From: Hyalangium minutum
GTDB lineage: Bacteria > Myxococcota > Myxococcia > Myxococcales > Myxococcaceae
Direction: 5' to 3'
Length of the DNA: 64,000 nucleotides
NCBI RefSeq assembly: GCF_000737315.1
Contig: NZ_JMCB01000022.1
Coordinates: 157,106 to 221,105 of the forward strand
Shown here: positions 33,758 through 64,000 of the stretch, one piece after another
Position numbering within the stretch: the stretch's first letter is position 1
Layout of the letters: every line of letters begins with the position of its first letter
Made by a program: the position numbers and the translations under genes
The notes under the pieces: model-generated
What the model was told of the DNA's origin: nothing
What the model saw: the letters and a program-made list of their open reading frames with translations, nothing else
The model's database searches: none

Positions 33758-35575
33758 TCAGGACGGGCGGCCCGCGAGCACCTGTGTGAGCTGACGTGCG
33801 ATGGTGGCGCACTGCTCGGCGTTGTGGGCATGGAGCGCGGCACGGCCGGTGTCGAGCAAGCTGCGCACATTGCCCACAGCGGCGTTGGCCTCGGGGGTGG
33901 GGTTCTCCTTGGCGCTGTGCTGGAGCATGCGAGCCAGCTTCTCTCCGCGCTCCAGCAGCTTGCGGAACTTCTCCTCGGCCTGGACGGCGTCCTCCTGGCC
34001 CTGCTCCTTGGCGTAGCGGGCCTGCTCTCGGGAGAGCTTCTCCGCCTCGGGCACGGGCAGGCTGGTGCGAGCCTCCAGCCGCACCTCCTCGGCCAGCCCC
34101 GAGCGCAGGTCCACCGCGCGCACCGAGAGGATGCCCTCACTGGAGAGCGCGAACGTCACCTCGATTTGCGTGTCCGCGCGGTTCCCCGCCTTCAGGTTCT
34201 TCAGCACCACCTCGCCCAGCTTGTGGCTCTCGTTCTGGAACTCGCTCTCGCCCTGGTAGATGGGGATGCGCACCTCGGCCTGGCCACCGCGGCTGGGCAG
34301 GAAGATGTCTCGCGCCACCACCGGCACCCCGGTGTTCTTGGCGATGAGCCGCTTGATGCGGCCGCCCAGCCAGCCCACGCCCAGAGACTGGCCCGCCACA
34401 TCCAGCAGCAGCGCCTTGCCGGACTGGCGCACCAGCTCCTCGGCGTGCACGGCGGCGCCCAGGGCCACGGCCTCGTCCGGGTTGACGTCCTTGGACGGCA
34501 CGCGGCCGAAGAAGTCCTGCACCAGCCGCTGCACCAGCGGCACGCGCGTCATGCCGCCCACCAGCAGCACCACGTCCACCGCCCGTGGATCCATTTGCGC
34601 GTCGCGCATCACGCCCTCGCACACCGCGAGGCAGCGGCGCGACAGCGGCTCGGACAGCGTCTCGAAGAAGGAGCGCGTGAGGACCGTCTCGATGCCCGTC
34701 AGCCGCCGGTTCGGCGAGTTGTAGTCCCCCAGGGCCGCCACGGAGATGACGGCCTCTTCCTGCTCGGTGAGCAGGCGCTTGGCCGTCTCGGCCGCCACCT
34801 TGAGCCGGCGCATGGAGGAGGCATCCTTGGACACGGCCTCGCGCAGGTCCTCCTCCACCTGGGCCACCAGCCACTGGACGATGCGCTGGTCGAAGTCCTC
34901 ACCGCCCAGCGTCGAGTCGCCCCCGGTGGCCTTCACCTCGAAGACGCCGTCCTTCACCTCGAGGATGGACACGTCGAAGGTGCCGCCGCCCAGGTCAAAG
35001 ACGAGCGCGTTGCCCTGGAAGCCGCGCGACAGCCCGTAGGCGAGCGCCGCAGCGGTGGGCTCGTTCACCAACCGCAGCACCTCCAGTCCGGCGATGGAGG
35101 CCGCCTCGCGCGTGGCCGAGCGCTGGTTGTCATCGAAGTTGGCGGGCACGGTGATGACGCAGCGGCTGACCTTGCGCCCAAAGTGGGCCTCCGCATCCAG
35201 CTTCAGCTCGCCGAGGATCATCGCCGCCACCTGGGTGACGGGGAGGACCTTGCCGGCCACACGTACGCGCACATCGCCCGTGGGGCCCGGAATCAGCGGG
35301 AAGGGCACCATCTTCCGGGCCTCTTCCATCAGCTCGGGCGTGCAGCGCCGCCCCAGGAACCGCTTGGTGGCCCACACCACGCTGTCGGGGTGCTCCTCGG
35401 CCATGCGCTGGGCGGCCGAGCCCACCACCCGCTCGCCGTCGTCATTCAGCCCCACGACGGAGGGGGTGAGCCGCCCACCCGCCCGCACGGGGATGATGCG
35501 CGTCCGGCCGTTCTCCACGGTGGCCACGGCGCTGTTGGTAGTCCCTAGATCGATGCCAATGACGGGTTCTTGCAT
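33758..35575 (-). CDS. Hsp70/DnaK-family protein (paralogue)
   Basis: [41 protein letters not shown], linker LLLDV. Confidence 0.93.
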   Translation of the reverse strand: MQEPVIGIDLGTTNSAVATVENGRTRIIPVRAGGRLTPSVVGLNDDGERVVGSAAQRMAEEHPDSVVWATKRFLGRRCTPELMEEARKMVPFPLIPGPTGDVRVRVAGKVLPVTQVAAMILGELKLDAEAHFGRKVSRCVITVPANFDDNQRSATREAASIAGLEVLRLVNEPTAAALAYGLSRGFQGNALVFDLGGGTFDVSILEVKDGVFEVKATGGDSTLGGEDFDQRIVQWLVAQVEEDLREAVSKDASSMRRLKVAAETAKRLLTEQEEAVISVAALGDYNSPNRRLTGIETVLTRSFFETLSEPLSRRCLAVCEGVMRDAQMDPRAVDVVLLVGGMTRVPLVQRLVQDFFGRVPSKDVNPDEAVALGAAVHAEELVRQSGKALLLDVAGQSLGVGWLGGRIKRLIAKNTGVPVVARDIFLPSRGGQAEVRIPIYQGESEFQNESHKLGEVVLKNLKAGNRADTQIEVTFALSSEGILSVRAVDLRSGLAEEVRLEARTSLPVPEAEKLSREQARYAKEQGQEDAVQAEEKFRKLLERGEKLARMLQHSAKENPTPEANAAVGNVRSLLDTGRAALHAHNAEQCATIARQLTQVLAGRPS

Positions 35576-35725
35576 GGCGAGCACAGGCCTGATGCGGTTC
35601 CACCGTGTGAGGGCACCTCGACTCCGGGCCAGAGGCTACCTCCGTTTCCCGCGGTCCAGCCAGATAGCGGCCTCTCACCCCAGTCATTGCCGGACAGTGG
35701 GGGCCGTGCTAAGGGCGCCTCCGCC

Positions 35726-36271
35726 ATGGTGAACGTGTCCATCGCCCGCCGCTACGCCCGGGCCCTCCTTGACGTCGCCGCCGACGCCAACCGCATCGAC
35801 GCCGTCGCTGATCAGCTCACCGCCTTCGTGAAGGCCTACGAGTCCAACCCCGAGCTGTCGGACGTGCTGCTCAACCCCGCCTTCTCGCGCAGCCAGCGCA
35901 GCCATGTGGTGGAGGCGATGATCCAGCTGACGGGCAACATCGACCCCACCCTGGCCAACGCCCTGCGGCTGCTGGTGGACCGCAACCGCCTCGTCTACCT
36001 GCCGGACATCGCCCGCGTGTACCGCGACATGGCGGATGCCCGCTCCGGCCGCGTGCGTGGCCACGTCACCAGCGCCTCCAAGCTCGCCCCGGACGCCGTG
36101 GAGCAGCTGCGCAAGAGCCTCCAGCAGCTCACCCAGCGCGACGTCATCCTCGAGTCCCGCGAGGACCCCAGCCTCCTGGGTGGCGTGTCGGCGCAGGTGG
36201 GCAGCGTCCTCTTCGACGGCAGCGTCCGCACCCAGCTGGAGCAGATGCGCCGCGCCCTCAAGCAGCAGTAG
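35726..36271 (+). CDS. atpH: ATP synthase F1 delta subunit
   Basis: SIARRYARAL, LLVDRNRL, DPSLLGGVSAQVGSVLFDGSV. Confidence 0.93.
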   Translation: MVNVSIARRYARALLDVAADANRIDAVADQLTAFVKAYESNPELSDVLLNPAFSRSQRSHVVEAMIQLTGNIDPTLANALRLLVDRNRLVYLPDIARVYRDMADARSGRVRGHVTSASKLAPDAVEQLRKSLQQLTQRDVILESREDPSLLGGVSAQVGSVLFDGSVRTQLEQMRRALKQQ

Positions 36272-36442
36272 CCGCGGTACCCGTCGGCGCGGGGAGGAAA
36301 TTTCCCGCGCCAGCACCCTACGCGGCAGGTTCTGTTGGCCTCTGGTCAGCCCGCAAGCCCCGCATTTCCTGTACGCCGTGAGACAGGGTATACTGCGCCA
36401 CATTGTGCGGACCGAAGTCCGCGACTCTTGGCCGACCTGCTC

Positions 36443-37918
36443 ATGGCGCAGCCCGCTCTTCCGCTCAACACCCTCGGCGCACTGCCCCTGGCGGTGCCGG
36501 AAGAGGCCCGCCCATTGCTTCAAACCCTGCTCAACGCACCAGGTTGGGCGCTGGGCTTTCTGGACCGGGAGCTGCGCCTGCGCTGGGCCAATGACACGCT
36601 GGCCGAGCTGACAGCGCATCCCCCCTCGTACCAGCTCGGCCGCCCTGTGGCGGAGCTCTGGCCGGGGCTGGCGCCCGCGCTGCTGCCGCTCTGTGCGCGC
36701 GCGCTGGCTGGAGAGGCCATTCCGGGCGAGCGGGTGGCGGTGGTGTCGGACCCGTCCCCTCAGGGGGAGAAGCTCCACCTGAGGCTCACCCTGCTGCCCG
36801 CGGTCTCCGGCGGCACCCTGGCCGGGCTCACCCTGCTGCTGCAGGACGAGACGGCCCAGGTGCGGGAAGAGGAGCTGCTGCGCGAGTCCGAGTCCCGGCT
36901 GAAGGCCCTGCTGGACCTGTCTTGCGACGGGTACCTGCTGCTGACCAAGGGCACGGTGGTGGAGGCCAGCCGCGGCAGTGCCTCGCTCTTCGGGTACACC
37001 CTGGAGGGGCTCGTGGGCCAGCCGCTCAGCCGGTTTCTGGCCCCCGAGTCCCGCAAGACGGCCCAGGACTACCAAGGGTCGGAGCTGCCGTACGAGCTGA
37101 CCGTGCTGCGCCCGGGTGGCCAGCGCGTCCCCATCCAGGTGCTGGGGCGCGAAGTTCCCTTCCACGGCAAGACGGCGTTCCTGGTGGCCCTGTGGGACCT
37201 CACGGGCAAGAAGGCCGCCGAGGAGGCCGCCACGCGCGCCGAGTACCTGCGCGAGCAGCTGCTGGGCGTGGTGGGGCATGACCTGCGCACCCCGCTGAAC
37301 ACCCTGCAGCTGGGCATCTCGGTGCTCCAGATGGATGGGAAGCTGGAGGAGCGCCAGGCCCGCCAGCTCACCATCATGGGCCGCGCGTCCCGGCGCATGG
37401 AGCGGATGATCCATGACTTGCTGGACTTCACCCGGGCCCGGCTGGCGGGAGGCATCCCGGTGACTCCCGCGCCCATGGTCATGGGAGCGGTCGTCGAGCG
37501 CGTGGTGGAGGAGTACCGGCTGGCCCACCCCGAGCACCCCATCGTCCCCTCCGCCGAGGGCGACCTGGCGGGCCACTGGGATGAGGCGCGGCTGGCGCAG
37601 CTGCTGGACAACCTGCTGCAGAACGCCCTGCGGCACGGCTTCCAGGACATCCCCATTCAACTGAGCGTGAAGGGCGAGCCGTCCGGAGTGCTGTTGACGG
37701 TGCTGAACAAGGGCCCCCTGCTGCCTCCCGAGGAGCGCGAGGCCATCTTCGAGCCGTTCCGCCGGGGCAAGCGTCCGGCCGGCGAGGGCCTGGGGCTGGG
37801 GCTCTACATCGCCAAGCAGATCGCCGAGTCCCACGGAGGGCGCATCACCGTGGAGTCCAGCCTGGAGCAAGGCACCAGCTTCAAGGTCTGGCTGCCCCGG
37901 CGGCCCTCCTCCCGCTGA
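36443..37918 (+). CDS. PAS-PAS sensor histidine kinase
   Basis: Two PAS-like segments, GHDLRTPL, NLLQNALRH, GLGLGLY; TATACT -10-like box at 36389-36394. Confidence 0.9.
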   Translation: MAQPALPLNTLGALPLAVPEEARPLLQTLLNAPGWALGFLDRELRLRWANDTLAELTAHPPSYQLGRPVAELWPGLAPALLPLCARALAGEAIPGERVAVVSDPSPQGEKLHLRLTLLPAVSGGTLAGLTLLLQDETAQVREEELLRESESRLKALLDLSCDGYLLLTKGTVVEASRGSASLFGYTLEGLVGQPLSRFLAPESRKTAQDYQGSELPYELTVLRPGGQRVPIQVLGREVPFHGKTAFLVALWDLTGKKAAEEAATRAEYLREQLLGVVGHDLRTPLNTLQLGISVLQMDGKLEERQARQLTIMGRASRRMERMIHDLLDFTRARLAGGIPVTPAPMVMGAVVERVVEEYRLAHPEHPIVPSAEGDLAGHWDEARLAQLLDNLLQNALRHGFQDIPIQLSVKGEPSGVLLTVLNKGPLLPPEEREAIFEPFRRGKRPAGEGLGLGLYIAKQIAESHGGRITVESSLEQGTSFKVWLPRRPSSR

Positions 37919-38104
37919 ACCCGTCCTGAGGGCGGTTTCCGGCCGGAATGAGGTGGGGAATGGGGCGCTAACCGGGCCGATGAGCCCTCTGGAGCCCTCA
38001 GCTGACCGATCGCGTTGCGGTGCTGGGGAGCGCGTGGTAAGGGGGGCCCGCTTTGGCTTCTGGGTGGCCCTGGAGCCACCCCACTTCAGAGGACTGAAGA
38101 GTTC

Positions 38105-39652
<1,548 letters not shown>

Positions 39653-41424: not shown

Positions 41425-42306
41425 ATGGAGGCAGCCCGAAGCGCAGCGGAGTGGCGACGCAAGCCGTGGCTGCCGTGGGCGCTTCTGGCGGGGGTGGGGG
41501 TGGCGGCGGCAGGAGGGGGGCTGATGGCCTCCCAGTCGGTCTCAGCGCTGCTGGAGCGCAATGCCCAGCTGGAGCAGCAGGCGCTGGAATCCGAGGCACG
41601 GGTGGAAGAGCTGCAGCTGCTGCGCGCGAGCATGGAGCGCCGGCTGAAAGTGCTGGAGCAGTCCCAGACGGGCACCACGGCTCAGCATGAGAGCGAGTCG
41701 AAGAAGGCGCGTGAGGCAGACGCACAGTTCGCCCGGCGCGAGGCGGCCCGGCAGACACTGGAGAAGAAGCTGAAGGCGGAGCTGGCGCAAGGCGACGTGT
41801 GGCTCGATGCGTCCCGCCCCGAGTCCCTGCGCGTGGAGCTCTCCGAGCGGCTCCTCTTCGAGCCCGGCCAGTCCGCACTGCTGCCCAAGGGCCAGGAGGT
41901 GCTCACGCGTGTGGGCACGGTGCTGGCCTCCGTGGGAGGCCATGCGGTGCAGGTGTCCTCGCACACGGACGAGATGCCCTCCGCTCCGGGTGGCGAGACC
42001 ACCGAAACGAGCTGGGAGCTGTCCTCCAGGAGAGCCACCACGGTGGTCCGCGCGCTGCTCGGGGCGCCCGTGAGCATGGCGCCGGAGCGGCTGAGCGCCA
42101 CGGGTCAGGCCTCGTTCCGGCCCGAGGTGCCGATGGACTCGCCGCAGAACCGGCTGCGCAACCGGCGCGTGGAGTTGGAGCTGACGCCCATGCCCGTGCC
42201 CCCGGCGTCGCTGCTCGCGGTGCTCGAGCCCACGCCGCCCCCCCTCGTCACCGCGAAGGCGCAGCCCGACCCAGCCAAGTCCGGCAAGCGCTCCGGCCGG
42301 CGCTGA
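41425..42306 (+). CDS. OmpA/MotB-like peptidoglycan-binding membrane protein
   Basis: TM helix, coiled coil, LLFEPG, SHTD, WELSSRRA, NRRVE. Confidence 0.85.
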   Translation: MEAARSAAEWRRKPWLPWALLAGVGVAAAGGGLMASQSVSALLERNAQLEQQALESEARVEELQLLRASMERRLKVLEQSQTGTTAQHESESKKAREADAQFARREAARQTLEKKLKAELAQGDVWLDASRPESLRVELSERLLFEPGQSALLPKGQEVLTRVGTVLASVGGHAVQVSSHTDEMPSAPGGETTETSWELSSRRATTVVRALLGAPVSMAPERLSATGQASFRPEVPMDSPQNRLRNRRVELELTPMPVPPASLLAVLEPTPPPLVTAKAQPDPAKSGKRSGRR

Positions 42307-42316
42307 GCTCAGCAAC

Positions 42317-42697
42317 TCAACGGTCCCCCTCCCCGCCACAAACCCGGAGCACCTCCTCCCACTGCATTCGCGAGCACCGCTCGAGGAACTGTGCGCTGGC
42401 CTCTTCCTTGTCCCGGAGGGTGGCTGCTTTTTCGGAGGCACTCTGGAGTGCTGCATCGAAGCGCTGACGGGCCTCGCTGGCCAGCCTCCGCACGTCCACG
42501 GGGCTGGCAAGGTAGGCCGCAGCCAACCCTCCCGGCCGGGTGAGCTCCTCATAGGCGCTGCGCAGCCGGCCAAATCCCTGAGGGTCCTGGTGAGGCGGGT
42601 GACGCGCCAGCGCCGCGAAATAAGCGCGCTTGATGGTGGCGACATCCAGGGTGGGCTGGAGGCCCAACACGACGAAGGGATCTTCTGAAGTCTTCAT
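42317..42697 (-). CDS. Non-canonical J-domain protein (HPP instead of HPD)
   Basis: DPFVVLGL...TIKRAY...HPPHQDPQGFGRLRSAYEEL; ATG overlaps the upstream stop (TGATG). Confidence 0.8.
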   Translation of the reverse strand: MKTSEDPFVVLGLQPTLDVATIKRAYFAALARHPPHQDPQGFGRLRSAYEELTRPGGLAAAYLASPVDVRRLASEARQRFDAALQSASEKAATLRDKEEASAQFLERCSRMQWEEVLRVCGGEGDR

Positions 42698-44664
42698 CAG
42701 GAGGTTCCCTCTCCCGTGGGAGGCTTCACCAGGGACAACTTCCTGGAGCGCTTGCGCTGAACTGGCGTCTTCGACGACTCCTTGTTCTTCGAGGCCTTGG
42801 GCTTGCGCGGGCGAACCCGATGCATGCGTGCCAGCATCTGCGCGTGCTTCACGGCAGGAGAGGACACGGCGGGGGGCTGCCCCGAAAAAGCCTGGAGGAA
42901 GGCTTCCAGCAGGGGCAGCAGATGTTTCAAAGGAGCCCCCTTGCGCTCGCAGGCCACCACCGCCTCGGCGAGCGCCTGCACATCCTTCGAGCGCTGCTCC
43001 AGCCAGCGGGCCCGGGTACGCCGGGAGAGTTCCTCCCTCCCGGTCCCATCCATCGCCAGCAAGACGTCCAGGTAGGCCGCATCACTGCCGCGGGCATCCA
43101 GATAGCGCGTGGCGGCGTCCCACGCCTCCGCGTCCGAGGAGGCCTGAATCACCGCCTCGTTCAAGAACTCCACCTGGTAGGGCAACATCCGAGGAGCAAA
43201 CCGGCGCCAGATGCGAAGTCCCTCGGGTGACAGCTCCATGAGGGCCTCGGCTTGCTGGAGCATCCCTCCCATCTCCAGCAATCTCTCCGCAGCCTCCACG
43301 CTGTGCGCGCCTCGCAGCAGGCGCTCCAGTTGCTGCTTCACCTTCGTGTCACGCGTCCGGTCCAGCAAGATCACCACCGCGTGGCTCAACAAGTACTTGA
43401 GCTCCTCGTCGGCAGCCTCCCAGCAGGCATCGACCCAGGACTCCACCAGCTCGCGCTTGAACGTGGCGGCCACGCACTCCGTCAACGCAACGCGCTCGGA
43501 GTGTTCGGCCGCCGCCAGCCAGGACAACAAGGCCGGCAGCTGCGCCCGAAGCAGCCGGCTCAGCCCCTCCTGAAGCCAGCCTGGGGCCAGGGCCGCCTCG
43601 GGGTCGCGCTCGTCCCACAGGAGCACGGCCCGAGCCCACAGCGCGGCATTAGGCTCCAAGAGCAACAGCGCCTCACACAGACGCAAGGCCCGGGGCAAGG
43701 CGGCATCGGAGAAGCGCACCCCGGACACGGCCTGCACCACCCAGTGCCGGGTGTCTGGTGGAAACGCCGCAGCTTGAGCCAGCGCACACCAGGGCTCGGC
43801 TTCTTCCTCGCGTGAGATTCCATCGGGCGGAAGCCCTCCCGTCACCACCCTCAGGGCCTGCAGCGCCAGGGAGGCGATGGCCGGCGAGTCCCTCACCTCT
43901 CCCGCGGCCCGCGCCAACAGCAAGGCAGGCTCCCGCAACCCCTCCACCCTCTGTGCCGCCTCCACCCGGAGCCACAGCTCGCGCGCGGCCAGCTGCGCGG
44001 CCAGCTCCCACACCGCCCGGCCCATCGAGTCAGGAACCTCTCGTGCCCATATCTGCACGCGGTTGGCGAACACGGAGTAGGGTTCCCTCGCATACAGCGC
44101 CAGAACAGCCCCTTCCACGGCCTCAGCCGTGCGAGGCCGCATCAGATGGGCATGCGGCCGTGCGGGCTCGACACCCAAGCGCGGATCCACGGCAGGCAGA
44201 CACGCGAGGAGGGGCGCTACGGACTCGGCAGCGGGGTCCCCCTCCGTGGAGAGCCATGCTTCCACGGCTCCGGCCAGCTCGGGCGCGCGCGACTGGCCCT
44301 CTGCGGCCAGGGGCTGCCACAGCCTGCGAGCCCGCGCCCACTCGCGGGCACGGCTTGCGGCCCACATCAGCGGCCAGTAGGTGGCCCGAGCCTCTTCGGG
44401 CTCCACGCCATGCTCCACGAGTCCTGGCTCCACATCCGCTCGCGCGGCCAGCGTCCCGAGCATCCCCCAGGCACCACGACGGTGCTGCTCACGCACGGCT
44501 CCCCGAAACAGCTCGGCCGCACGGGGAAGCAGGCCGTCCCGGAGCGGCCTGGGCAGCCGGAGCAACACGGGCAAGGCGCCCTCCAGGTCTCCTCGCTCCA
44601 GATACTTCCGCGCGTCCTCGTGCCACCGGCGATGCTGGCGCTCTTCGCGGTCGTGCCGGGCCAT
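42697..44664 (-). CDS. Hypothetical 655-aa helical protein with basic C-terminal tail
   Basis: ATG 1 nt after the Hsp70 stop; Ala/Leu-rich, probably alpha-solenoid; no family recognised. Confidence 0.7.
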   Translation of the reverse strand: MARHDREERQHRRWHEDARKYLERGDLEGALPVLLRLPRPLRDGLLPRAAELFRGAVREQHRRGAWGMLGTLAARADVEPGLVEHGVEPEEARATYWPLMWAASRAREWARARRLWQPLAAEGQSRAPELAGAVEAWLSTEGDPAAESVAPLLACLPAVDPRLGVEPARPHAHLMRPRTAEAVEGAVLALYAREPYSVFANRVQIWAREVPDSMGRAVWELAAQLAARELWLRVEAAQRVEGLREPALLLARAAGEVRDSPAIASLALQALRVVTGGLPPDGISREEEAEPWCALAQAAAFPPDTRHWVVQAVSGVRFSDAALPRALRLCEALLLLEPNAALWARAVLLWDERDPEAALAPGWLQEGLSRLLRAQLPALLSWLAAAEHSERVALTECVAATFKRELVESWVDACWEAADEELKYLLSHAVVILLDRTRDTKVKQQLERLLRGAHSVEAAERLLEMGGMLQQAEALMELSPEGLRIWRRFAPRMLPYQVEFLNEAVIQASSDAEAWDAATRYLDARGSDAAYLDVLLAMDGTGREELSRRTRARWLEQRSKDVQALAEAVVACERKGAPLKHLLPLLEAFLQAFSGQPPAVSSPAVKHAQMLARMHRVRPRKPKASKNKESSKTPVQRKRSRKLSLVKPPTGEGTS

Positions 44665-44665
44665 C

Positions 44666-46345
44666 TCAGGGCTCCAGATGCTGCGGCTCGTGCTCGAGGA
44701 AGAAGTCCAACAAGGCCTCTTCGGCACGCTCCCGTGCCAGGCCCTCGCTCTGTGCGTACCGCTCCAGCAGGAGCTGAAGCGCGGCGCGTGGCGCAGGCGC
44801 GAGCTGCTCGAGCAACGCCCGCCCCTTGCGCACCACGGCGCTCTGCTCCGCCGCTGGAACCTGGGCGCCCTTGCCTGCGTCAGCGACCGACAACGCCACG
44901 GTCTTCGCATTGGCCGTGCCAGGCTGGCTGACGAAGACCTTCACCACGCCATTGAGGTCATACGAGAACTCCACCCTCACCGGAGACTCCGCGGGCTGCC
45001 GCTCGAGCGGAAAGTCAAAGCTTCCCACCCGCGTGTTCTCCGAGACCCGAGGGGACTCGCCCTGGAAGACATCGACCTGAATCCGCTCCTGTTCGGGTAA
45101 CAAGGTGTAGAATTCCTGGACTCTCACCGCGGGCATCACCGTGTTGCGGCGAATGACCGGGGCAAAGGTGTCCGGCTCAGCCCGCAGCTCGTCGCCCTCA
45201 CCGAAGACGCGGACCCCCAGGCTGTGGGAGGCCACATCCACGAGGATGCGGTCCACCGGCTCACCTGTCAGAAGCCCTGCTTGGATGGCGGCGCCCAGCC
45301 CCACCGCCAGATCTGGATCCACCTCCTCGTGGATGTCGGCGCCGAATGCGTCCTCGAGAAGCTCCCGCACCCGGGGAATCCGGGTCGAGCCCCCCACCAG
45401 GCAGATCCGCGACAAGGCTTGCCCCTCAAGCGAGGCCTCCCGAACCACCTGTCGAGCCAGCGTCACGGTGGACTCGAGCAGCGGCTCGATGAGCGCCTCG
45501 AACGTGCGCCGCCGCACCTCCAGCTCCAAGTGGATGGGCCTTCCTTGAGCATGGGTGAGAAACTCCTCGCGCACGTGCACCGCGATGTCCTGCGACAGGC
45601 GGATCTTCGTCTCCTCGGCCAGCCGGCGGAGCCTCGCCATGGCGCGCACGTCCTCGCGAGGATCCACTCCCTGATGGCGCTTGAGCTCCTCCAGGAAGAG
45701 CTGAAGCAGCTTGTCGTCGAAGTCGTCACCGCCCAGGCGGGTATTGCCTGCGGTGGCGCGCACCTCGCGCACCCCTTGGAAGACCTCCAGCACCGAGACA
45801 TCAAAGGTGCCGCCGCCGAGATCATAGATGAGGAGGATCTCCGGCTCGTCACGGCCCGCGGCCTCGGGAGGCAAGAGCCTGTCATAGACGAGCGAGGCGC
45901 TGGTCGGCTCGTTGAGCAGCCGCAGCACCTGGAGCCCCGCGCGCTCACCCGCTTCCAAGGTCGCCCGGCGTTGAGCGTCATCGAAATAGGCAGGAACGGT
46001 GATGACGACATCCCTCACGGGATGGCCGGTGGCCTTCTCCGCGCCCTGCTTGAGCGCGGAGAGGATGTCGGCGGAGATCTGCTCCGGAGCCAGCTCCTGG
46101 CCAGCCAAGGAGTAGCGGTGGGCAGCCATCCCCATCTTGCGCTTCACCGAACGGACACACCGCTCAGGCCATTGCAGCTCGAGGTTGCGGGCCTCACGCC
46201 CCACCACGACCCGCTCATCCATATAGAGCACCACCGAGGGCACAATAGGGCTGCCATCAATGGGCAAGGCCACGGGGCGGCCCTCGACAAGGTGGGCGAT
46301 GACCGAGTTGGTGGTGCCAAGATCGATTCCAAAGGCATGGCTCAT
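44666..46345 (-). CDS. Hsp70-family protein (559 aa, short C-terminus)
   Basis: [39 protein letters not shown]; ATGA overlap with the GrpE-like gene. Confidence 0.93.
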
Positions 46346-46902
46346 GGACGGTTCCTCACGGTGATGGCTTCGCCCTCTCGAAGAAGGGCTCCGCCCCGAA
46401 GGACGGCGGCCCGGACGACGCGCGCAATGGAGCCCTCGGCGAGCCCCGGACGAGGCTCCGTGCCCACGACGCGGAACAGGCGTCCGTCGGGCAGCTGACC
46501 GAGGGGCGCCACGCGGGTCATCCCCGCGTGCGAGAGGGAGCGCTCGAGCCGGGCGACGACCCCCTTGAGCCCGGGCGCCAGCGCTGGGTCCGCCAGACGA
46601 ATGGCTTCCTCCAGCAGATCCAGCGCATCCAACAGCTCGCTCCACTCGGGAGCTACCTGCGAGGGAGCACCAGGAGGCGCGCTCAGGGAGGACAGCAGGG
46701 CACTGCGCAGGTCGGCGAACCCCCCTTCCAGCTTGCGCTCCAGTTCCTCGAGCTGAAGCCCCCACCGGGCCTGAGCACGAGCAGACTTCTGGACCGCCTC
46801 TGCCAAAGGCGCAGCCCAGGCGGGAGGCGTCCCCGTCGAGTCCGTTTCTTGAGGAAGTTCAGGCACTTGCGGACGTGCCTTCCAAAGACGGCGAAGCCAC
46901 AT
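46342..46902 (-). CDS. GrpE-like nucleotide exchange factor
   Basis: Helical segment (LLDALDLLE..A) followed by GQLPDGRLFRVVG...RVVRAAVLRGGALLREGE, matching the GrpE beta-domain pattern. Confidence 0.8.
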   Translation of the reverse strand: MWLRRLWKARPQVPELPQETDSTGTPPAWAAPLAEAVQKSARAQARWGLQLEELERKLEGGFADLRSALLSSLSAPPGAPSQVAPEWSELLDALDLLEEAIRLADPALAPGLKGVVARLERSLSHAGMTRVAPLGQLPDGRLFRVVGTEPRPGLAEGSIARVVRAAVLRGGALLREGEAITVRNRP

Positions 46903-47130
46903 AAGCGTTCTCAGCCCTACGACGGGTCCTCACTCAAGGTAACCCATGAAGTAGGGCGCTGCACGCACAACCTGTGACGACCTGACAGATAGGTTGCGGG
47001 AGAACCAGGCTTGGCGCCCCCTGACTGGCAGGCTCTGGCCCTCCTGTCCGACAAGCAGACGGGTGGGAACGGGCTGCGCCGGGCAGGCGCATCTCCCAAG
47101 AACGGTGGCTGGGAACGCGCGGCTTTCTGC

Positions 47131-48378: not shown

Positions 48379-48528
48379 GCAGTGGACATACCCGCCTGGG
48401 GCGCGCACTACCAGCACCGCCCCAGGCTTGCTTGCTCGGCCGGATCTGCGGTTTAAATAAATCCCAGCAGGCACCGTCCATGCGCACCGGCCGAGGCCGT
48501 GGCGGCCCCCCTGCTCAGGAGTTGGACC

Positions 48529-49383
48529 GTGTCGTCCATCCGCAATCTGCTGTGTGCCGCGCTGGCCACTGCCGTGCTGTTCTCGGCCCCGAGCGCGGAG
48601 GCCCGTTTCGGTAAGCGCTCCAGCTCGAGCGACTCCTCCGAGAAGAAGTCCCACGACGACAACGACGACGCCCCGCGCCGCAGCCGTCACCGCAAGTCCT
48701 CGGGCTGGGCGTTCCTGGCGGATGTCGTTCTGACGCTCCTCGTCGAAACGCGCCCGGTGGTCTACGCGTCGACGCCGCCCCCTCCTCCTCAGCCGCCGCC
48801 GCAGCAGCAGGTCCAGGTGGAGGCCCCTCCCGTCGTGACGCGATCCCGGCCCGCCCGGCCGGAGCCCACCACCAGCGTGCGGCTGGGCGTGGACGGCGCG
48901 GCCATGAACACCGTGGGCGGGCTGAGCGCCTTCCTGGGTGTCGAGGGCGTGCGCGCGGGCTTCGATGCGCGAGCGATCGGGCTCCTGATGCCCACGGATG
49001 ATGGGACGCAGGGCACGGACAACATCACGCTGATGAACCTTCACCTCACCTATGCGCTGGTCGCCACGGAGAGGGCCCGGCTGCGCATCGAGGGCGGCAT
49101 CAGCACCGCGCACGCGCCGGACATGACGGCGCTGGGCCCCAGCATCGCCCTGTCGCTCGACGCGGGCCTGGTGGGAAACCTGGACCTGGAGCTGCGCGCG
49201 CAGGCCACCCCATACCCCTACCGTCAGCTCGATGCGCAGGCGGGGCTGGCGCTCCACCTCAACGCGCTGGTGCTGCGCGGCGGGTGGCGCGGGCTCTACC
49301 TGAACGACATGGGCTGGGTGGACGACGTCGTGCACGAGGACGCCTTCGGCGGTCCATTCGTCGGCCTCGGCTTCGCGTTCTAA
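48529..49383 (+). CDS. Secreted protein with small C-terminal beta-barrel, paralogue 1
   Basis: GTG after a CAGGAG RBS; signal peptide ending AEA, then RFGKRS; C-terminus GFAF. Confidence 0.75.
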   Translation: MSSIRNLLCAALATAVLFSAPSAEARFGKRSSSSDSSEKKSHDDNDDAPRRSRHRKSSGWAFLADVVLTLLVETRPVVYASTPPPPPQPPPQQQVQVEAPPVVTRSRPARPEPTTSVRLGVDGAAMNTVGGLSAFLGVEGVRAGFDARAIGLLMPTDDGTQGTDNITLMNLHLTYALVATERARLRIEGGISTAHAPDMTALGPSIALSLDAGLVGNLDLELRAQATPYPYRQLDAQAGLALHLNALVLRGGWRGLYLNDMGWVDDVVHEDAFGGPFVGLGFAF

Positions 49384-49467
49384 ATGGAGCAGTGAATATT
49401 GAGGGGCCGCCTCCCGTCATGCGCCTACGCGCGCGATGTCAGGCGCATCCCCGTCAGGAGGCCGTCC

Positions 49468-50382
49468 GTGTCCTCTCTCCGCAACGTGCTGGTGGCCGCG
49501 GCTGTCATCGGGTTGAGCTTCTCTTCCTCCGAGGCGGAGGCGCGCTTCGGCAAACGCTCCAGCTCGACGGAAGAGAAGAAGTCCAAGGTCCACGACGCCA
49601 CCGCCGTGGGCGAAGAGTCCTCGTCCTCGGACAGCGACGACGATGACGCCGGGGGAAGTACCTCCTACTCCCCTCCTCCTCGCCGGTCGGAGCCGGGCAA
49701 TGCGGTCGGCGCCTTCTTCACCCTCCTCGAGATCCTCGCGGATACGCCGTCTCCCCAGACATATGAGACGTATGAGGTGACTTCGACGCGTGTGCCCGCG
49801 ACCGTCAGTGAGCTCCCCGAGACCGCTTCGACGAGCACTGTGGCCGCAACCCCTTCGGAGAAGCTCGGCTCCAACGTCCGGCTGGGCGTAGATGCCGCCT
49901 CCGTGGGAGGTGGCACAGGCATCTCGCTGTTCCTGGCCTTCGAGGGCGAGCGCATGGGCATGGATGTGCGCGGCACCGAGCTGACCCTGCCTACGGATGA
50001 TGGGACAGCCGGGAGCGACAGCATCAAGCTGGCGAACCTGCACCTGACCTACGCGGTGGTCGCCCGCGAGAACCTGCGCGTGCGCATCGAGGGCGGGCTC
50101 AGCGGCGCCCAGGCGCCGGACCTGTCCGTCGCGGCTCCCAGCTTCGCGGTCTCCCTCGAGGGCTGCTTGCTGCCCATGGTGGATGTGGAGCTGCGCGCGC
50201 AGGCCACGCCGTTCCCCTATCAGCAGCTCGACGCCCAGGCCGCGCTCGCCCTGCGCCTCCAGGCGCTCGTGGTGCGTGGCGGGTGGCGCGCGCTCTACCT
50301 GAACGACAACGGCATGGTGGAGGGCGAGGCGCACTCGGACGCCTTCGGTGGCCCGTTCCTCGGCGCTGGCTTCACGTTCTGA
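49468..50382 (+). CDS. Secreted protein with small C-terminal beta-barrel, paralogue 2
   Basis: Same AEA-RFGKRS start, LPTDDG loop, C-terminus GFTF. Confidence 0.75.
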   Translation: MSSLRNVLVAAAVIGLSFSSSEAEARFGKRSSSTEEKKSKVHDATAVGEESSSSDSDDDDAGGSTSYSPPPRRSEPGNAVGAFFTLLEILADTPSPQTYETYEVTSTRVPATVSELPETASTSTVAATPSEKLGSNVRLGVDAASVGGGTGISLFLAFEGERMGMDVRGTELTLPTDDGTAGSDSIKLANLHLTYAVVARENLRVRIEGGLSGAQAPDLSVAAPSFAVSLEGCLLPMVDVELRAQATPFPYQQLDAQAALALRLQALVVRGGWRALYLNDNGMVEGEAHSDAFGGPFLGAGFTF

Positions 50383-50459
50383 TCCGCTGCTGAATTTTCG
50401 AGGCAAGCAGCCGTCCAAGCCTGCATCGAGCCGCAAGGCTGACGCCCAGGAGTTGGACC

Positions 50460-51371
50460 GTGTTTGCTCCCAAGAACCTGCTGTGTGCCGCGCTCGCCGC
50501 GAGCCTGTTCTTCTCCGCCTCCAACGCTGAGGCCCGCTTCGGCAAGCGTTCCAACTCCAGTGACTCCGAGCAGCAGAAGGAAGAGAAGAAGAAGGACAAG
50601 GAGGAGCGCCGCGAGTCACCCGCTCCCCGAGTCCATGACGCCTCGGCGGTGAACTCGAGCAGCACCCATGGTGCCTCGCCCGTGGGCAGCAGCCGCCCGC
50701 CGCCTCCTCCGCCGCCGCGTGTCGTCGTCGTCGAGCCCGCTCACGAGCCGGACTACTACGCGCCCCCTCCGCCGAGCTACTACGTCACTCCCGTCCCGAA
50801 CTACGTCGCTCCCGCCCCGAGCGTGGAGGTCCACTCACCGCGCAAGGACACCCTCTACAGCCCACTGCGCCTGGGCCTGGAGGCAGGGTCTGCGGGCGGT
50901 GGCGCGCAGATGAACCTGTCCCTCGCCATTGAGGGCGAGCAGCTGGGCTTGGAGGGCCGCCTCACGGGGCTCGCGCTGCCCACGGATGATGGCTCGGGAG
51001 GCTCGGACTCCATCACCGTGGCCGGCGTGCACCTCACCTACGCCCTCGTCGCGCAGGACCGCCTGCGCTGGCGCGTGGAGGCCGGCTTCACCTCGGCGCA
51101 CGCCCCGGACCTGATCGTCTACGGTCCCAGCCTCGGCACCTCGTTCGAGGCGCGGCTCGGAGGCCCCCTGGACTTCGAGCTGCGTCTCCAGGGCACGCCC
51201 TTCCCGTACCGGCAGGCGGACGCGCAGGCGGCGCTGGCCCTCAAGCTCAACCCATGGGTCCTCCGCGCCGGGTGGCGCACGCTCCTGCTGGACGACGCGG
51301 GCCTGGTGGACGGCGAGGTCCACCGGGACGTCTTCACCGGCCCGTTTGTCGGCGCGGGCCTCATCTTCTAA
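50460..51371 (+). CDS. Secreted protein with small C-terminal beta-barrel, paralogue 3
   Basis: Same AEA-RFGKRS start, LPTDDG loop, C-terminus GLIF. Confidence 0.75.
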   Translation: MFAPKNLLCAALAASLFFSASNAEARFGKRSNSSDSEQQKEEKKKDKEERRESPAPRVHDASAVNSSSTHGASPVGSSRPPPPPPPRVVVVEPAHEPDYYAPPPPSYYVTPVPNYVAPAPSVEVHSPRKDTLYSPLRLGLEAGSAGGGAQMNLSLAIEGEQLGLEGRLTGLALPTDDGSGGSDSITVAGVHLTYALVAQDRLRWRVEAGFTSAHAPDLIVYGPSLGTSFEARLGGPLDFELRLQGTPFPYRQADAQAALALKLNPWVLRAGWRTLLLDDAGLVDGEVHRDVFTGPFVGAGLIF

Positions 51372-52612: not shown

Positions 52613-52774
52613 ACAGGACTGCCGCCCACGTTCCGGGGAAACCCTTAGGCAAGCCGCGTGCCGATCGATGTGGGTGTATCAACTACCGTGGGGACACAAC
52701 ATCCGACAAGTTTCGAGGATAATGAGAAACAAGCTGATCCACTTCGAAAGATTCCGGACCGGAGCCGCACCACC

Positions 52775-54772
52775 ATGTCCGTCAAACTCACGCCGCCGAC
52801 TCCGGGTTCGCCCAGACGAACCCCCCAAGAGACGCCCGCCGCATCGACCCAGAAGTCCGACGCCTCCAATCCCCTGGCCAGGCTGGGCCAGGGCCTGCAG
52901 CGGGTAGCGCAGCAGGTCGACAAGAACCTCCACCAAGTCGTCGACACGTTCGAGGCCCGCCTCCCCGGAGTGACGGGGCAGGCCGGCGCGGCGACCAAGT
53001 CGTGGGAGGGCATCACCCTCACCGGCAAGCCGCTGCAAATCCCGCTCGACAAGCTGCTGGACGTGGACCTGAGCAAGGTCCGCAAGCTGCTCGAGCGCGT
53101 GGTGCCGCAGAAGATCCGCGACGACGAGGCCAAGAAGTTCACCGGGCAGACGCAGGACTTCCGGGACACGCTGGGCAAGGTGCGCTCGCTGGGCACGGAG
53201 CTGGACATGCTCAAGCCCAACTCGCCTCGGTACAACGAGGTGAAGCAGGCGCTGTCCAAGGCCGAGGGAGACCTGCAGGCGAAGTACGGCTACACGCGAG
53301 CCACCGCGCCGAAGCCGGGCGCCATGTGGGTGGATCCGCAGTTCATGGCCAAGGACGTGCCGAACGGCCAGGTGTCCGCCTCGAAGCTGGCCACGGGCAC
53401 GCCGGTGACGAAGCCGCCCGAGCCGCTGGACTTCCTCTTCGGCGGCAAGCCGGACGGGGCGAAGCAGGCACAGGCGTACCAGGCCTCGGTGGCCGCGAAG
53501 CGCGCCGAGCTGGGCATGCCCATCCAGGACGGCAAGCCGATCGGCGTGCACATGAGCCTGGAGGGCGGCGGCGGCAAGGGCAAGCGCTACGCGGCGATGC
53601 TCTCCGAGATGCGCCAGCTGGGCGTAGTGCCCACGAGCCTCACGGGCACGTCGGCGGGCTCCATCGCGGCGTCGTTCGCGGCCACGGGGGCCTCGCCCGA
53701 GCAGATCGACGCCATCGCCAAGGATCCGCGGCTGCAGAAGCTGTACGACGTGGACCTGGACTTCAAGGACGGCGGGCTCCTCAATGGGCAGGCCGCGTAT
53801 GACCTCTTCGACTCGAAGCTGCGCGAGCTGACTGGCATCAAGGACCGGCCTGTCACCTTCGCGGACCTGAAGGTGCCGCTGCAGCTGGTGGCGGCCAAGG
53901 CCTACGACAGCGCCTCCCCCAACGGCTTCCCCACCACGAAGGACCGGCTCTTCGTCTTCAGCCAGGAGACGACGCCGGACACGCCGGTGGCGCTGGCGAT
54001 GCGCGCCTCCATGGCCATCCCGGGCGTCTTCGAGCCCGTGCAGATGGTGGACCCCACCACGGGCCGCAGCATGCACCTGACGGACGGTGGCTCGCTGGAC
54101 AACCTCCCGATGGGCTACGCGAAGAACAACCTGCCGCAGATCGGCGCGGCGCTGCTGAGCCCGGACTCGAACCACCCGACCAACGCGGTGGGCACCGCCA
54201 AGCCGCTGCCCACGGGCCAACTGGACGCCACCAACGTGCTGTGGAACGCCGTCAACGGCTACACGTTCCTCAAGGACAACGCCACGGGCGCGGCGGACTT
54301 CCGGGACCGGACGGCTCCGGGGGCCAACCAGTTCATGATCAGCCTGCCCACGTGGAACCTGGACAACCCCAAGCAGCAGGACAGCACTCTGGGCTTCGGG
54401 TACGACGCCAAGGTGGACCCCATCCTGGACGGGCAGACGCGCGAGGTGACGCGCAACTTCCTGCGCAACTTCCTGGATGACATGCGCGTGCCGGGCTCGC
54501 GCGGCACCAACGTCACCACCGACGTGCCGAAGAACCTGCGCTTCCAGGAGCAGGTGACGGTGAACGGGCAGAACTACCAGGTCAGCTACAAGGGCGGGGA
54601 CAACCTGCTGGCGCTCAACACCTCGACGGGCAAGACGTCCGAGCTGAAGGTGGGCCAGAAGAAGATCGAAGCCATGTACCTGGACCACCTGGCGTTCGGG
54701 GACCTGAAGGCGCAGCTCGCCCACTCGATCACCAACCCCAAGAGCGTGAAGCCAGACTGGCTCCCGTTCTAG
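52775..54772 (+). CDS. Patatin-like phospholipase with long N-terminal extension
   Basis: GGGGKG oxyanion motif, GTSAG nucleophile, DGG catalytic motif. Confidence 0.9.
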   Translation: MSVKLTPPTPGSPRRTPQETPAASTQKSDASNPLARLGQGLQRVAQQVDKNLHQVVDTFEARLPGVTGQAGAATKSWEGITLTGKPLQIPLDKLLDVDLSKVRKLLERVVPQKIRDDEAKKFTGQTQDFRDTLGKVRSLGTELDMLKPNSPRYNEVKQALSKAEGDLQAKYGYTRATAPKPGAMWVDPQFMAKDVPNGQVSASKLATGTPVTKPPEPLDFLFGGKPDGAKQAQAYQASVAAKRAELGMPIQDGKPIGVHMSLEGGGGKGKRYAAMLSEMRQLGVVPTSLTGTSAGSIAASFAATGASPEQIDAIAKDPRLQKLYDVDLDFKDGGLLNGQAAYDLFDSKLRELTGIKDRPVTFADLKVPLQLVAAKAYDSASPNGFPTTKDRLFVFSQETTPDTPVALAMRASMAIPGVFEPVQMVDPTTGRSMHLTDGGSLDNLPMGYAKNNLPQIGAALLSPDSNHPTNAVGTAKPLPTGQLDATNVLWNAVNGYTFLKDNATGAADFRDRTAPGANQFMISLPTWNLDNPKQQDSTLGFGYDAKVDPILDGQTREVTRNFLRNFLDDMRVPGSRGTNVTTDVPKNLRFQEQVTVNGQNYQVSYKGGDNLLALNTSTGKTSELKVGQKKIEAMYLDHLAFGDLKAQLAHSITNPKSVKPDWLPF

Positions 54773-54799
54773 CGGCGCGGTTCAACTGGGAAGAGGCGC

Positions 54800-55699
54800 G
54801 TGTCGGATTCCTTCTATCAGCAGCGGCTTCCGCAGCCGGCGAAGCGCTCGTGGATGCCGTGGCTGATCACCGTGCTGGTGGTGCTGCTGGCACTGGGAGC
54901 GGTGGGATACAGCTATGGCCTCTCCCGCACCGCCCAGACTCGGGCCGACGCGGCGGAGGCCGAGGGCCTCAAGGCCCACGAGCGCGCCAAGGCGGCGGAG
55001 CTGGCCCAGCGGGAGCTGGAGGCCAAGCTGGCGGCGATCGACTCGGAGAAGTCGCAGCTGTCCACCCAGCTCACCCAGCTCTCCACCGAGCGCGATCAGC
55101 TCTCGCAGGCGGTGCAAGAGAAGGACGCGGAGCTGGCCCGCATCAAGGCCACGTTCCAGGACCTGGAGGAGAAGATGAAGGCGGAGATCGCCGACGGCGA
55201 GATCCGTCTGTCGCAAGGCGAGGGCCGCATCCAGGTGGACCTGGTGGACAAGATCCTCTTCGACTCGGGCGAGGCCACCCTCACCGAGCGCGGCGCCAGC
55301 GTGCTCACGCGGCTGGGCGCGGTGCTCGCGGGGGTGGAGGGCCGCAGCATCCAGGTGTCGGGACACACGGATGACAGCCCTCCTTCTCAGCGGCTCGCCG
55401 CCACGTTCCCCACCAACTGGGAGCTGTCCGTGGCGCGCGCGGTGAACGTGGTGCGCTTCCTTCAGGAGAAGGCGAAACTCCCGGCGCGCCGGCTCGTGGC
55501 CTCGGGCTATGGCGAGACGCACCCAGTGGCCAGCAATGCCACGCCCAAGGGCCGTGCGCGCAACCGCCGCATCGAGATCCTTCTCATCCCCGATCTGGCC
55601 GCCGCCAAGACGGAGCTCACCGAGGCTGCTGCGAAACCGGCGCCGGGAGCCACGGACGTGCAGCCCACCAAGGCAGCGGTGAAGCCCGGCTCTCATTGA
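54800..55699 (+). CDS. OmpA/MotB-like peptidoglycan-binding membrane protein
   Basis: TM helix, coiled coil, ILFDSG, GHTD, NWELSVARA, NRRIE. Confidence 0.88.
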   Translation: MSDSFYQQRLPQPAKRSWMPWLITVLVVLLALGAVGYSYGLSRTAQTRADAAEAEGLKAHERAKAAELAQRELEAKLAAIDSEKSQLSTQLTQLSTERDQLSQAVQEKDAELARIKATFQDLEEKMKAEIADGEIRLSQGEGRIQVDLVDKILFDSGEATLTERGASVLTRLGAVLAGVEGRSIQVSGHTDDSPPSQRLAATFPTNWELSVARAVNVVRFLQEKAKLPARRLVASGYGETHPVASNATPKGRARNRRIEILLIPDLAAAKTELTEAAAKPAPGATDVQPTKAAVKPGSH

Positions 55700-60994: not shown

Positions 60995-61021
60995 CCCTCA
61001 GCGAGAGAGGACACGTACTCC

Positions 61022-62218: not shown

Positions 62219-62245
62219 CGAAGCATCGACTGTTGAAGTGAGTTC

Positions 62246-62286
62246 AAGCCCGGGTTCCTCCTCGCGAGGACCCGGGCTTTCTCTTT
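62246..62286 (+). terminator. Rho-independent terminator after the FadL-like gene
   Basis: AAGCCCGGGT-TCCTC / GAGG-ACCCGGGCTT stem followed by TCTCTTT. Confidence 0.85.
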
Positions 62287-62312
62287 GGCATCTATAGGTA
62301 GAAAGGGAGTTC

Positions 62313-63839: not shown

Positions 63840-64000
63840 GAAGGTCTGCGCACCTCGGCGTGCTTTCGCCTTCAGTGCATAAGTGCCCTCTGGTTTCGTG
63901 GTAAGAGTTCACCGGCTCAAGCAGCCAGAGCAGCCGGAGCGGTCTCGAAGCTCGGGAGTAGCGAGGGAGGCTGGAGGCCGTGGCGGTGCGCCGCCAAGGC

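Follow-up and report, generated by a model that had tools for sequence, protein, structure and literature searches.

Introduction

Three kinds of prokaryotic Hsp70, namely DnaK, HscA and HscC, are recognised in current reviews (PMC8215388). HscC proteins comprise 550–580 aa, lack the segment equivalent to DnaK residues 76–101, carry an insertion of 4–8 aa in loop L1,2 and have a shortened helix B. They bind mainly positively charged peptides, and a membrane-localised function of HscC with its J proteins DjlB and DjlC is suggested by a review of the E. coli proteins (PMC8215388). Here we analyse a four-gene operon on the minus strand of a 64,000-nucleotide (nt) stretch of the Hyalangium minutum contig NZ_JMCB01000022.1; the whole stretch is called the window below. 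The operon (42317–46902) encodes a GrpE-like protein, a short Hsp70, a DUF6109 protein and a J-like protein. It is highly probable that these genes form a dedicated four-part chaperone module with a part in neither defence nor biosynthesis. We further propose, with moderate confidence, that the module is a self-contained, specialised and non-housekeeping Hsp70 machine that has the DUF6109 solenoid as its obligate partner.

The operon resembles the HscA-HscB-IscU system in that the genes for a dedicated Hsp70 and a minimal J protein share an operon with the gene for the protein that may be their target, and in that the C-terminal helical part of the J protein would bind this partner. IscU, however, is small, serves as an enzyme scaffold and has an invariant LPPVK site, whereas DUF6109 is a predicted 655-aa solenoid with a variable tail. 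There are also no isc genes near the module, and HscA works without an exchange factor and lacks the GrpE loop (PMC8215388). In Myxococcus xanthus, the specialised Hsp70 paralogues CsdK1 and CsdK2, with their partner CdbS, affect chromosome organisation under stress (PMC10313047). These proteins likewise represent specialised myxobacterial Hsp70s with one small partner; however, they belong to another Hsp70 lineage with a PilZ domain, borrow DnaJ1 and GrpS, and have neither a DUF6109 partner nor a dedicated operon.

Results

Four coupled genes in a conserved order

The first gene of the module encodes the GrpE-like protein (46342–46902, minus strand, 186 aa) and is followed by the genes for the short-lid Hsp70 (44666–46345, minus strand, 559 aa), the DUF6109 protein (42697–44664, minus strand, 655 aa) and the J-like protein (42317–42697, minus strand, 126 aa). 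The TGA stop codon of the GrpE-like gene overlaps the ATG of the Hsp70 gene at the junction CCATGAGCC, which reads ATGA. The Hsp70 gene ends in ...GAGCCCTGA, and a single base, G, separates this end from the ATG of the DUF6109 gene, leaving a 1-nt gap at the junction CCCTGAGATGG. The stop codon of the DUF6109 gene and the start codon of the J-like gene share one base at the junction TCCTGATGAAG, which reads TGATG. An earlier note on this DNA, made from the letters and their open reading frames, had described precisely this coupling of four minus-strand genes, and the junctions bear it out.

Related loci (n = 22) comprise 13 genome loci and 9 further distinct contigs. The genome loci were obtained with an alignment-based scan. 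As far as the contigs reach, the order GrpE-like, Hsp70, DUF6109, J-like is the same in 22 of 22 related loci, and the neighbourhood comparison proposed in the earlier note places the gene for the 655-aa protein between the Hsp70 gene and the J gene in every one of them. The first outcome that, by the earlier note, would have spoken against its reading, a 655-aa gene that is not kept within the operon, thus did not occur. The junctions do not exceed 19 nt and are mostly 4-nt overlaps. The carriers are Archangiaceae, a Polyangia metagenome-assembled genome (MAG), an Anaeromyxobacteraceae MAG and metagenomic contigs. In the two MAGs and the metagenomic contigs, the DUF6109 protein is only 28–34% identical and the order is still kept; the other three proteins have diverged less across the same span, with identities of 62–67% for the Hsp70, 44–55% for the J protein and 47–52% for the GrpE-like protein. 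Within Archangiaceae, the Hsp70 is 78–84% identical. Given the same order in every related locus examined, the four-gene arrangement is, on this comparison, far beyond chance. The flanks of the module are unrelated between genera. The synteny of the window is conserved only in four close Hyalangium-type relatives, which are Hyalangium versicolor (L010), two metagenomic loci (L024 and L025) and one Logan contig.

The ratio of nonsynonymous to synonymous divergence (dN/dS) was calculated for the window against two relatives. It is 0.06–0.13 for the Hsp70, 0.10–0.16 for the J protein, 0.15–0.26 for the GrpE-like protein and 0.24–0.27 for DUF6109, and the flanking genes range from 0.03 to 0.29. 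By this measure, all four module genes are under purifying selection. The sequences indicate that all four genes are real, translationally coupled and co-inherited as one unit.

The G+C content at third codon positions (GC3) is 0.73, 0.82, 0.82 and 0.76 for the four module genes. In 39 other genes of the window it has a mean of 0.889, a standard deviation of 0.030 and a minimum of 0.828. The impression gained by eye in the earlier note, that codons of the operon end in A or T more often than those of neighbouring genes, holds when it is counted. Synonymous divergence (dS) is 0.51–0.88 for the module genes compared with 0.27–0.36 for the flanks. Because dS exceeds that of the flanking genes and the synteny is conserved, the low GC3 is best read as weak codon bias in an accessory operon that is passed on vertically and expressed at a low level. 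Horizontal transfer was considered as a cause of the low GC3 and is not favoured, in view of the synteny in H. versicolor, L024 and L025 and the raised dS, which weak codon bias would be expected to produce.

Distribution of the module and the database name of DUF6109

A word-indexed search of 5.8 billion proteins returned 49 DUF6109 clusters, and those with a name are all from Archangiaceae. When 1.84 billion representatives were searched exhaustively with a profile, 157 clusters were obtained, nearly all of full length (600–750 aa). One family member is labelled Candidatus Binatia. The Hsp70 subfamily comprises 499 clusters at E<1e-100, and DUF6109 adjoins the Hsp70 in all three subfamily members sampled at 61–69% identity. 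The module is an accessory element of the chromosome and widespread in Myxococcota. Neither the DUF6109 matches nor the top 120 Hsp70 matches include a protein from Myxococcus or Corallococcus, and only two GrpE homologues are reported for M. xanthus (PMC10313047); for these two reasons, the module is probably absent from Myxococcus and Corallococcus. An identity of the operon with M. xanthus SglK/GrpS was considered and rejected. SglK is of the DnaK type and complements E. coli dnaK (PMC8265645), the module Hsp70 fails the DnaK thresholds given below, and Myxococcus is missing from the matches just described.

The protein carries the name 'DUF6109 family natural product biosynthesis protein' at NCBI and in UniRef, and DUF6109 would accordingly be an accessory of natural-product biosynthesis. 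In Archangium minus (L003) and A. violaceum Cb vi76, the module does have a type I polyketide synthase (PKS) cluster 1.5–5 kb downstream. However, a PKS occurs within 10 kb in just 2 distinct genomes among the 18 loci checked and nowhere in the 64-kb window, and the constant neighbours of DUF6109 are the Hsp70, the GrpE-like protein and the J protein rather than biosynthetic enzymes. A biosynthetic role is hardly credible on these grounds, and the most likely origin of the name is a cluster whose boundary was set too wide. It is unsupported by the genomic evidence and is corrected here.

A short Hsp70 with HscC-like build and a GrpE-signature loop

The Hsp70 matches PF00012 with 405 bits. Its ATPase motifs, hydrophobic linker (ILVDV) and β domain align to DnaK structures, which places the protein in the Hsp70 superfamily, and the R-N-T segment of the J interface, which contacts the J domain in DnaK, is intact. 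The PF00012 match reaches only about position 497 of the 599 profile positions, and therefore the lid is short; it comprises only about 70 residues. The protein has both the size and the indels of HscC, including a length of 559 aa (compared with 550–580 aa), the lobe-I deletion (DnaK 76–101), the L1,2 insertion in the substrate-binding domain and the short lid. The L1,2 insertion measures 9 aa here and 4 aa in E. coli HscC in the same alignment. In contrast to HscC and HscA, the GrpE-signature loop is kept at DnaK length, which fits an Hsp70 that has its own GrpE-type exchange factor.

The scores against the DnaK equivalogs are 428 bits for NF001413 (cut-off 648) and 418 bits for TIGR02350 (cut-off 822), and the score against the HscA equivalog TIGR01991 is 358 bits (cut-off 708); all three fall short of their thresholds. 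The protein is 34% identical to E. coli HscC, 34% to DnaK and 36% to HscA, and 35% identical to a second Hsp70 encoded in the window 9 kb from the module. Because the identity to all of these proteins is only 34–36%, the module Hsp70 is placed by sequence in a separate lineage and is not the housekeeping DnaK.

The operon might instead be a redundant back-up DnaK system in which DUF6109 is an unrelated passenger. Myxobacteria have many Hsp70 paralogues, with 15 in M. xanthus (PMC8265645), and the second Hsp70 gene of the window is close by. However, the module Hsp70 scores below the DnaK equivalog cut-offs, the J protein has none of the domains found in DnaJ outside its J domain (described below), and non-DnaK-type Hsp70s of M. 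xanthus failed to rescue an E. coli dnaK mutant (PMC8265645). Moreover, a passenger that had diverged to 28% identity would not still lie between the genes for the Hsp70 and the J protein in different classes of the phylum. A back-up system is consequently a very unlikely explanation. The dedicated triad suggested in the earlier note agrees with the comparisons, both in the distance of its Hsp70 from housekeeping DnaK (428 bits against a cut-off of 648) and in its inheritance as one unit.

Near the C-terminus of the Hsp70, residues 541–550 (44696–44725, minus strand) form a conserved motif that is followed by a short acidic/variable tail. Among 116 subfamily members, the column conservation of the motif is 0.7–0.9, which is as high as in the ATPase domain, compared with about 0.5 in the surrounding lid. 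The motif and the acidic tail are a possible docking site for the repeat protein or its basic tail.

A GrpE-like factor and a J fold with an altered loop

The GrpE-like orthologues in two related loci (L015 and L017) match PF01025 with confidence, and a profile built from 10 GrpE-like orthologues has GrpE (4ANI) as its sole PDB match, with E=0.004 over 139 residues.

The AlphaFold2 model of the J-like protein has a predicted local distance difference test (pLDDT) score of 88.6. The J domain (residues 1–65) contains four helices at 7–10, 19–32, 39–53 and 57–64, and is followed by a 42-residue helix (69–110) and a short helix (113–120). At least the top 40 Foldseek matches in the PDB are all J domains, with template modelling (TM) scores, normalised to the target, of 0.6–0.73 and root-mean-square deviations of 2–3 Å; one of them, 5nro_B, is the J domain of DnaJ in complex with DnaK. 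The small protein has, in its predicted model, the four-helix J fold. The Gly/Phe-rich, zinc-finger and client-binding domains of DnaJ are absent by Pfam and in the model.

The loop between helices II and III (residues 33–38; 42584–42601, minus strand) reads HPPHQD in place of the canonical HPD. Across 22–26 orthologues, Pro34, Pro35 and Asp38 are invariant and His33 and His36 are conserved in at least 90%; distant loci read HPPHxD, TPPHRD or HAPHSD. Judged by this alignment, the rule of the family is PPHxD and not HPD, and the J-like protein does not have the HPD by which J-domain proteins are defined. The three parts of an Hsp70 machine that the earlier note saw in the operon are thus represented by the Hsp70, the GrpE-like protein and the protein with the J fold, in which HPPHQD replaces the canonical HPD.

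DUF6109 is a predicted α-solenoid

The DUF6109 protein matches PF19604 with 1306.6 bits (cut-off 25) over residues 1–650 of 655. Its AlphaFold2 model has a mean pLDDT of 85.1 and is all-α, with 34 helices. Disorder is predicted for a loop (160–171) and for the tail (623–655), where the pLDDT is below 50. As the earlier note had proposed, the model was compared with known structures using Foldseek, and this search returned generic TPR/HAT/Sel1 solenoids only (E about 1e-4, TM ≤0.25 in PDB and BFVD). The structural neighbours include Prp6, Ski3, Ctr9, APC subunits, IFT-A, TTC7 and OGT, and no specific structural homologue was found in the PDB and BFVD searches. There is no Pfam TPR or Sel1 match at E≤0.1. 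The invariant residues of the family are Trp, Leu, Arg, Glu, Gly, Pro and Ala, with no His, Cys or Asp among them, and neither Pfam nor the structure reveals an effector, enzymatic or membrane domain. DUF6109 is thus predicted to be a cytoplasmic, non-enzymatic, TPR/Sel1-like α-solenoid, which we read as an interaction scaffold. A specific role as scaffold or adaptor is proposed more tentatively and has somewhat less than an even chance of being correct.

The basic tail and terminal motifs of DUF6109

The C-terminal tail of DUF6109 (about residues 615–655; 42700–42822, minus strand) is rich in Lys and Arg, includes ...HRVRPRKPKASKNKESSKTPVQRKRSRKLSLVKPP... and ends in ...RKRSRKLSLVKPPTGEGTS. 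The Lys/Arg-rich tail reported in the earlier note is therefore real, and its predicted disorder spans residues 623–655. Of 138 full-length homologues, 86% have a tract of this kind.

The last 40 residues of 97 DUF6109 representatives, with a mutual identity of at most 50%, were scanned for terminal motifs. The patterns QxxLF, QLxL[LF] or QLxLx[LF] occur in 21 of the 97 tails; shuffled tails average 0.28, and none of 1000 shuffles gave more than 4. In 61,435 body residues, these patterns are found 9 times. Examples are QLSLPL, QLSLF, QLDLF and QLGLPL, which follow the Lys/Arg tract and lie 4–16 residues from the C-terminus. The consensus of β-clamp binding motifs is QL[S/D]LF, QxxLF or QLxLxL, with QLSLPL as the Hda motif and QLSLF as the PolC motif (PMC12309361), and the examples are identical or close to it. 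In a further 11 of the 97 representatives the last residues are [ILFV]P[FL]-COOH, as in QDDIPF and QDEIPF, compared with 0.07 expected by chance. The C-terminal tip of SSB is DDDIPF, and these ends resemble it in sequence. Homologues with either type of terminal motif are encoded in the same kind of four-gene module (e.g. L022:1165-3042 and L023:1480-3387). At the equivalent place the window copy reads KLSLV, which deviates from the clamp consensus at positions 1 and 5, and the consensus is kept in only 4 of 41 Archangiaceae DUF6109 clusters.

The motifs raise the idea that ancestral DUF6109 anchored an Hsp70 machine of its own at the replisome or at hubs on DNA as a clamp- or SSB-directed remodelling chaperone, which would be a dedicated version of the role of DnaK/DnaJ/GrpE in lambda and plasmid replication. 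We regard this idea as speculative and rather improbable. With its leucine-rich core and basic flanks, the terminal motif could equally be a handle for the Hsp70. The lineage of the window has largely lost the motif (KLSLV), and the targeting may for this reason have changed in this organism.

Genomic surroundings and upstream leader

The nearest relatives of the window proteins are from Hyalangium and related Archangiaceae. The G+C content of the window is 66–74% except in the last few kb; towards the right end (61000–64000) it falls from about 0.68 to 0.60–0.62. No tRNA was found in the window. The neighbours of the module are ordinary: a second Hsp70, atpH, a PAS histidine kinase, atpA, a small open reading frame resembling a lipoprotein gene, a HAD hydrolase and a convergent OmpA/MotB-like gene. 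They also include, upstream on the strand of the module, an MFS transporter gene, and further the genes of a MobA-like transferase, a patatin and three tandem paralogues of about 300 aa. The second, longer Hsp70 (33758–35635, minus strand, 625 aa, PF00012 520 bits) is divergently oriented beside atpH and may match one of the atypical M. xanthus Hsp70s of PMC8265645. Within 35549–39652 (plus strand), a PAS-PAS-HisKA-HATPase kinase gene (36272–37918) lies between atpH (ATP synthase delta) and atpA (alpha) and so breaks up the atp cluster in an unusual way. A coiled-coil OmpA/MotB-like gene (41425–42306, plus strand) runs towards the J gene and leaves a gap of 10 nt.

The three tandem paralogues (48499–51371, plus strand) of 294, 327 and 303 aa have signal-peptide-like N-termini and share an EARFGKRS motif; their middle part is of low complexity and their C-terminal half is conserved. 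One of the three was searched and has no Pfam or PADLOC match, and H. versicolor (L010) has two copies at the syntenic place. Farther along, a 707-aa patatin-like phospholipase is directly followed by a MotB/OmpA-like protein (52649–55699, plus strand).

Upstream of the module, and downstream of the MFS gene on the same strand, is a 228-nt intergenic leader (46903–47130, minus strand). It contains no match to a sigma-70 consensus promoter, to the chaperone elements CIRCE (controlling inverted repeat of chaperone expression) and HAIR (HspR-associated inverted repeat) or to sigma-54 sites, and no Rfam family. A sigma-32-like match is likewise absent from the window leader; weak ones, with 3 mismatches, occur in two other loci. 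No excess of terminators was found. A CCTACT(N5-7)GGTTAC-like stretch located 40–60 nt upstream of the first gene is common to the Hyalangium-type loci (window 46903–47000, L002, L004 and L010). The Archangium loci have a different conserved leader (TTCTGTTTTGTATGGAGCGCCGGTCGGAAACG...).

The surroundings bear on the proposal of the earlier note that DUF6109 is a toxic stress or anti-phage effector, which the triad holds inactive until a phage or a stress titrates the Hsp70 and releases it. A compact self-contained operon, a patchy distribution in the phylum and a below-average GC3 would suit such an element; a PIN/PhD pair and an AAA_14 gene lie near the module in one locus (L018), and host DnaJ is known to take part in phage sensing by bNACHT25 (PMC12169576). 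However, PADLOC has no match for the four module proteins, and for ten neighbours it gives generic MotB/OmpA and patatin (phospholipase) matches only. The generic matches of both MotB/OmpA-like proteins are to ZorB (MotB), and none of the proteins searched resembles another Zorya component. The association with defence islands that the earlier note wished to see checked did not materialise, the flanks being housekeeping or metabolic, different between genera and in no case a defence island. The non-enzymatic solenoid lacks effector, enzymatic and membrane domains as well as invariant residues of the catalytic type, its gene-wide dN/dS of 0.25 gives no sign of diversification, and the synteny is stable in four related genomes. 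Finally, phage and plasmid collections hold no copies, and PHROGs gave a match to the Hsp70 family only. We conclude that a chaperone-gated effector is very improbable, and this part of the earlier note is abandoned.

Discussion

Comparison with DnaK and HscC systems

Like DnaK-DnaJ-GrpE, the module contains all three functional classes, and the ATPase motifs, the linker, the J-interface arginine and the GrpE-signature loop are conserved. Unlike that system, its Hsp70 fails the equivalog thresholds and has a truncated lid, its J protein lacks the Gly/Phe-rich, zinc-binding and client-binding domains together with the HPD, a fourth gene is an obligatory member of the order, and no CIRCE, HAIR or clear sigma-32 consensus is located upstream in the window.

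HscC/DjlB/DjlC is a closer parallel in build. Beyond the indels of the Hsp70, both systems appear to be specialised and weakly expressed with J proteins of their own, and the preference of HscC for positively charged peptides matches the basic tail of DUF6109. In contrast, the module Hsp70 is no closer in sequence to HscC, at 34% identity, than to DnaK or HscA; the GrpE loop and a GrpE-like gene belong to the module, whereas HscC presumably works without GrpE; and its J protein is a soluble 126-aa protein with PPHxD, compared with 475–483 aa for DjlB and DjlC. The hscC locus of E. coli K-12 (L019, 676000–690000) reads ybeQ(Sel1)-ybeR(DUF1266)-djlB-ybeT(Sel1)-ybeU(DUF1266)-djlC-hscC, with an ATGA overlap between each DUF1266 gene and the J gene that follows it. 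Such a pairing of a helical protein with a J protein recalls DUF6109 and its J protein. Homology of DUF6109 to YbeR (DUF1266) or DjlC was considered and rejected, with hhalign probabilities below 1%.

The earlier note knew of no characterisation of such an arrangement. No paper mentioning DUF6109 was found, in agreement with this statement; a dedicated Hsp70 gene beside the gene for its partner, on the other hand, has precedents in hscB-hscA/iscU and in the E. coli hscC locus.

A model for the four-part machine

In eukaryotic TPR-J co-chaperones, such as DNAJC3/p58IPK and DNAJC7/TPR2, helical repeats are combined with a J domain, and TPR domains dock on the Hsp70 C-terminus. Because the order of solenoid and then J protein, with a 1-nt overlap, mirrors these fused proteins, DUF6109 and the J protein may act jointly as a split helical-repeat-plus-J co-chaperone. 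The module would thus have the repeat followed by the J domain as the eukaryotic proteins do, here split over two overlapping genes, and the conserved acidic/hydrophobic motif at the Hsp70 C-terminus could dock on the repeat protein. The similarity does not extend to sequence, in which there is no homology; the Pfam TPR and Sel1 models do not match DUF6109, and no fused DUF6109-J protein was found among the 157 representatives.

In the proposed cycle, the solenoid would select or hold a target while the basic tail localises the machine. The J domain would recruit the Hsp70 in its ATP state and trigger hydrolysis, and the Hsp70 would clamp a basic disordered segment, which could be either the Lys/Arg tail of the solenoid itself or part of a protein held by the solenoid. 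The binding of HscC mainly to positively charged peptides (PMC8215388) offers a parallel for this step. The GrpE-like factor would then reset the cycle. The net outcome would be the remodelling or release of a specific assembly rather than general folding.

DUF6109 could alternatively be the single dedicated client of the machine. The C-terminal helices of the J protein would then bind DUF6109 and pass the basic tail or the tail motif to the Hsp70, which would control the folding, the oligomeric state or the partner release of the solenoid, much as HscB/HscA act on IscU or auxilin/Hsc70 on the tail of the solenoid in clathrin. The strict co-inheritance and translational coupling, the nearly universal disordered Lys/Arg tail and the match of its charge to the HscC preference (PMC8215388) would all be expected of a client; the hscB-hscA-iscU operon is a bacterial precedent, and the PilZ-DnaK paralogues CsdK1/2 of M. 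xanthus act on one client, CdbS (PMC10313047). However, being chaperoned explains no function, and the solenoid must still bind something else. Unlike LPPVK of IscU, the tail motif is not invariant and is gone from most Archangiaceae copies, and the equimolar coupling of four genes suits a complex equally. We therefore consider the client role somewhat unlikely, although less so than any of the rivals discussed above.

Several points weigh against the specialised Hsp70 machine with the solenoid as obligate partner. The window copies of both co-chaperones score below the Pfam gathering cut-offs, with 23.2 bits (E=5.9e-5; cut-off 25.8) for the GrpE-like protein against GrpE and 18.6 bits (cut-off 27.8) for the J-like protein against DnaJ, although the orthologue matches to GrpE and the modelled J fold back the two assignments. 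Because the J protein has no canonical HPD, its stimulation of the ATPase is assumed. In a profile comparison, DUF6109 has no sequence relation to the E. coli partners of HscC. Finally, the data fit a targeting scaffold and a dedicated client equally well.

Significance

With an HscC-like build, a GrpE-type factor of its own and a PPHxD J domain, the module looks like a further self-contained kind of Hsp70 system beside those of DnaK, HscA and HscC. Its J protein provides a natural test of how negotiable the HPD rule is. The pairing of solenoid and J protein may be a bacterial counterpart either to split TPR-J co-chaperones or to systems that encode the client in the operon, and, if the tail motifs are functional, the module would be a dedicated chaperone linked to DNA replication or repair. 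For the myxobacteria, it provides a tractable entry point into the question of why these organisms keep many Hsp70 paralogues.

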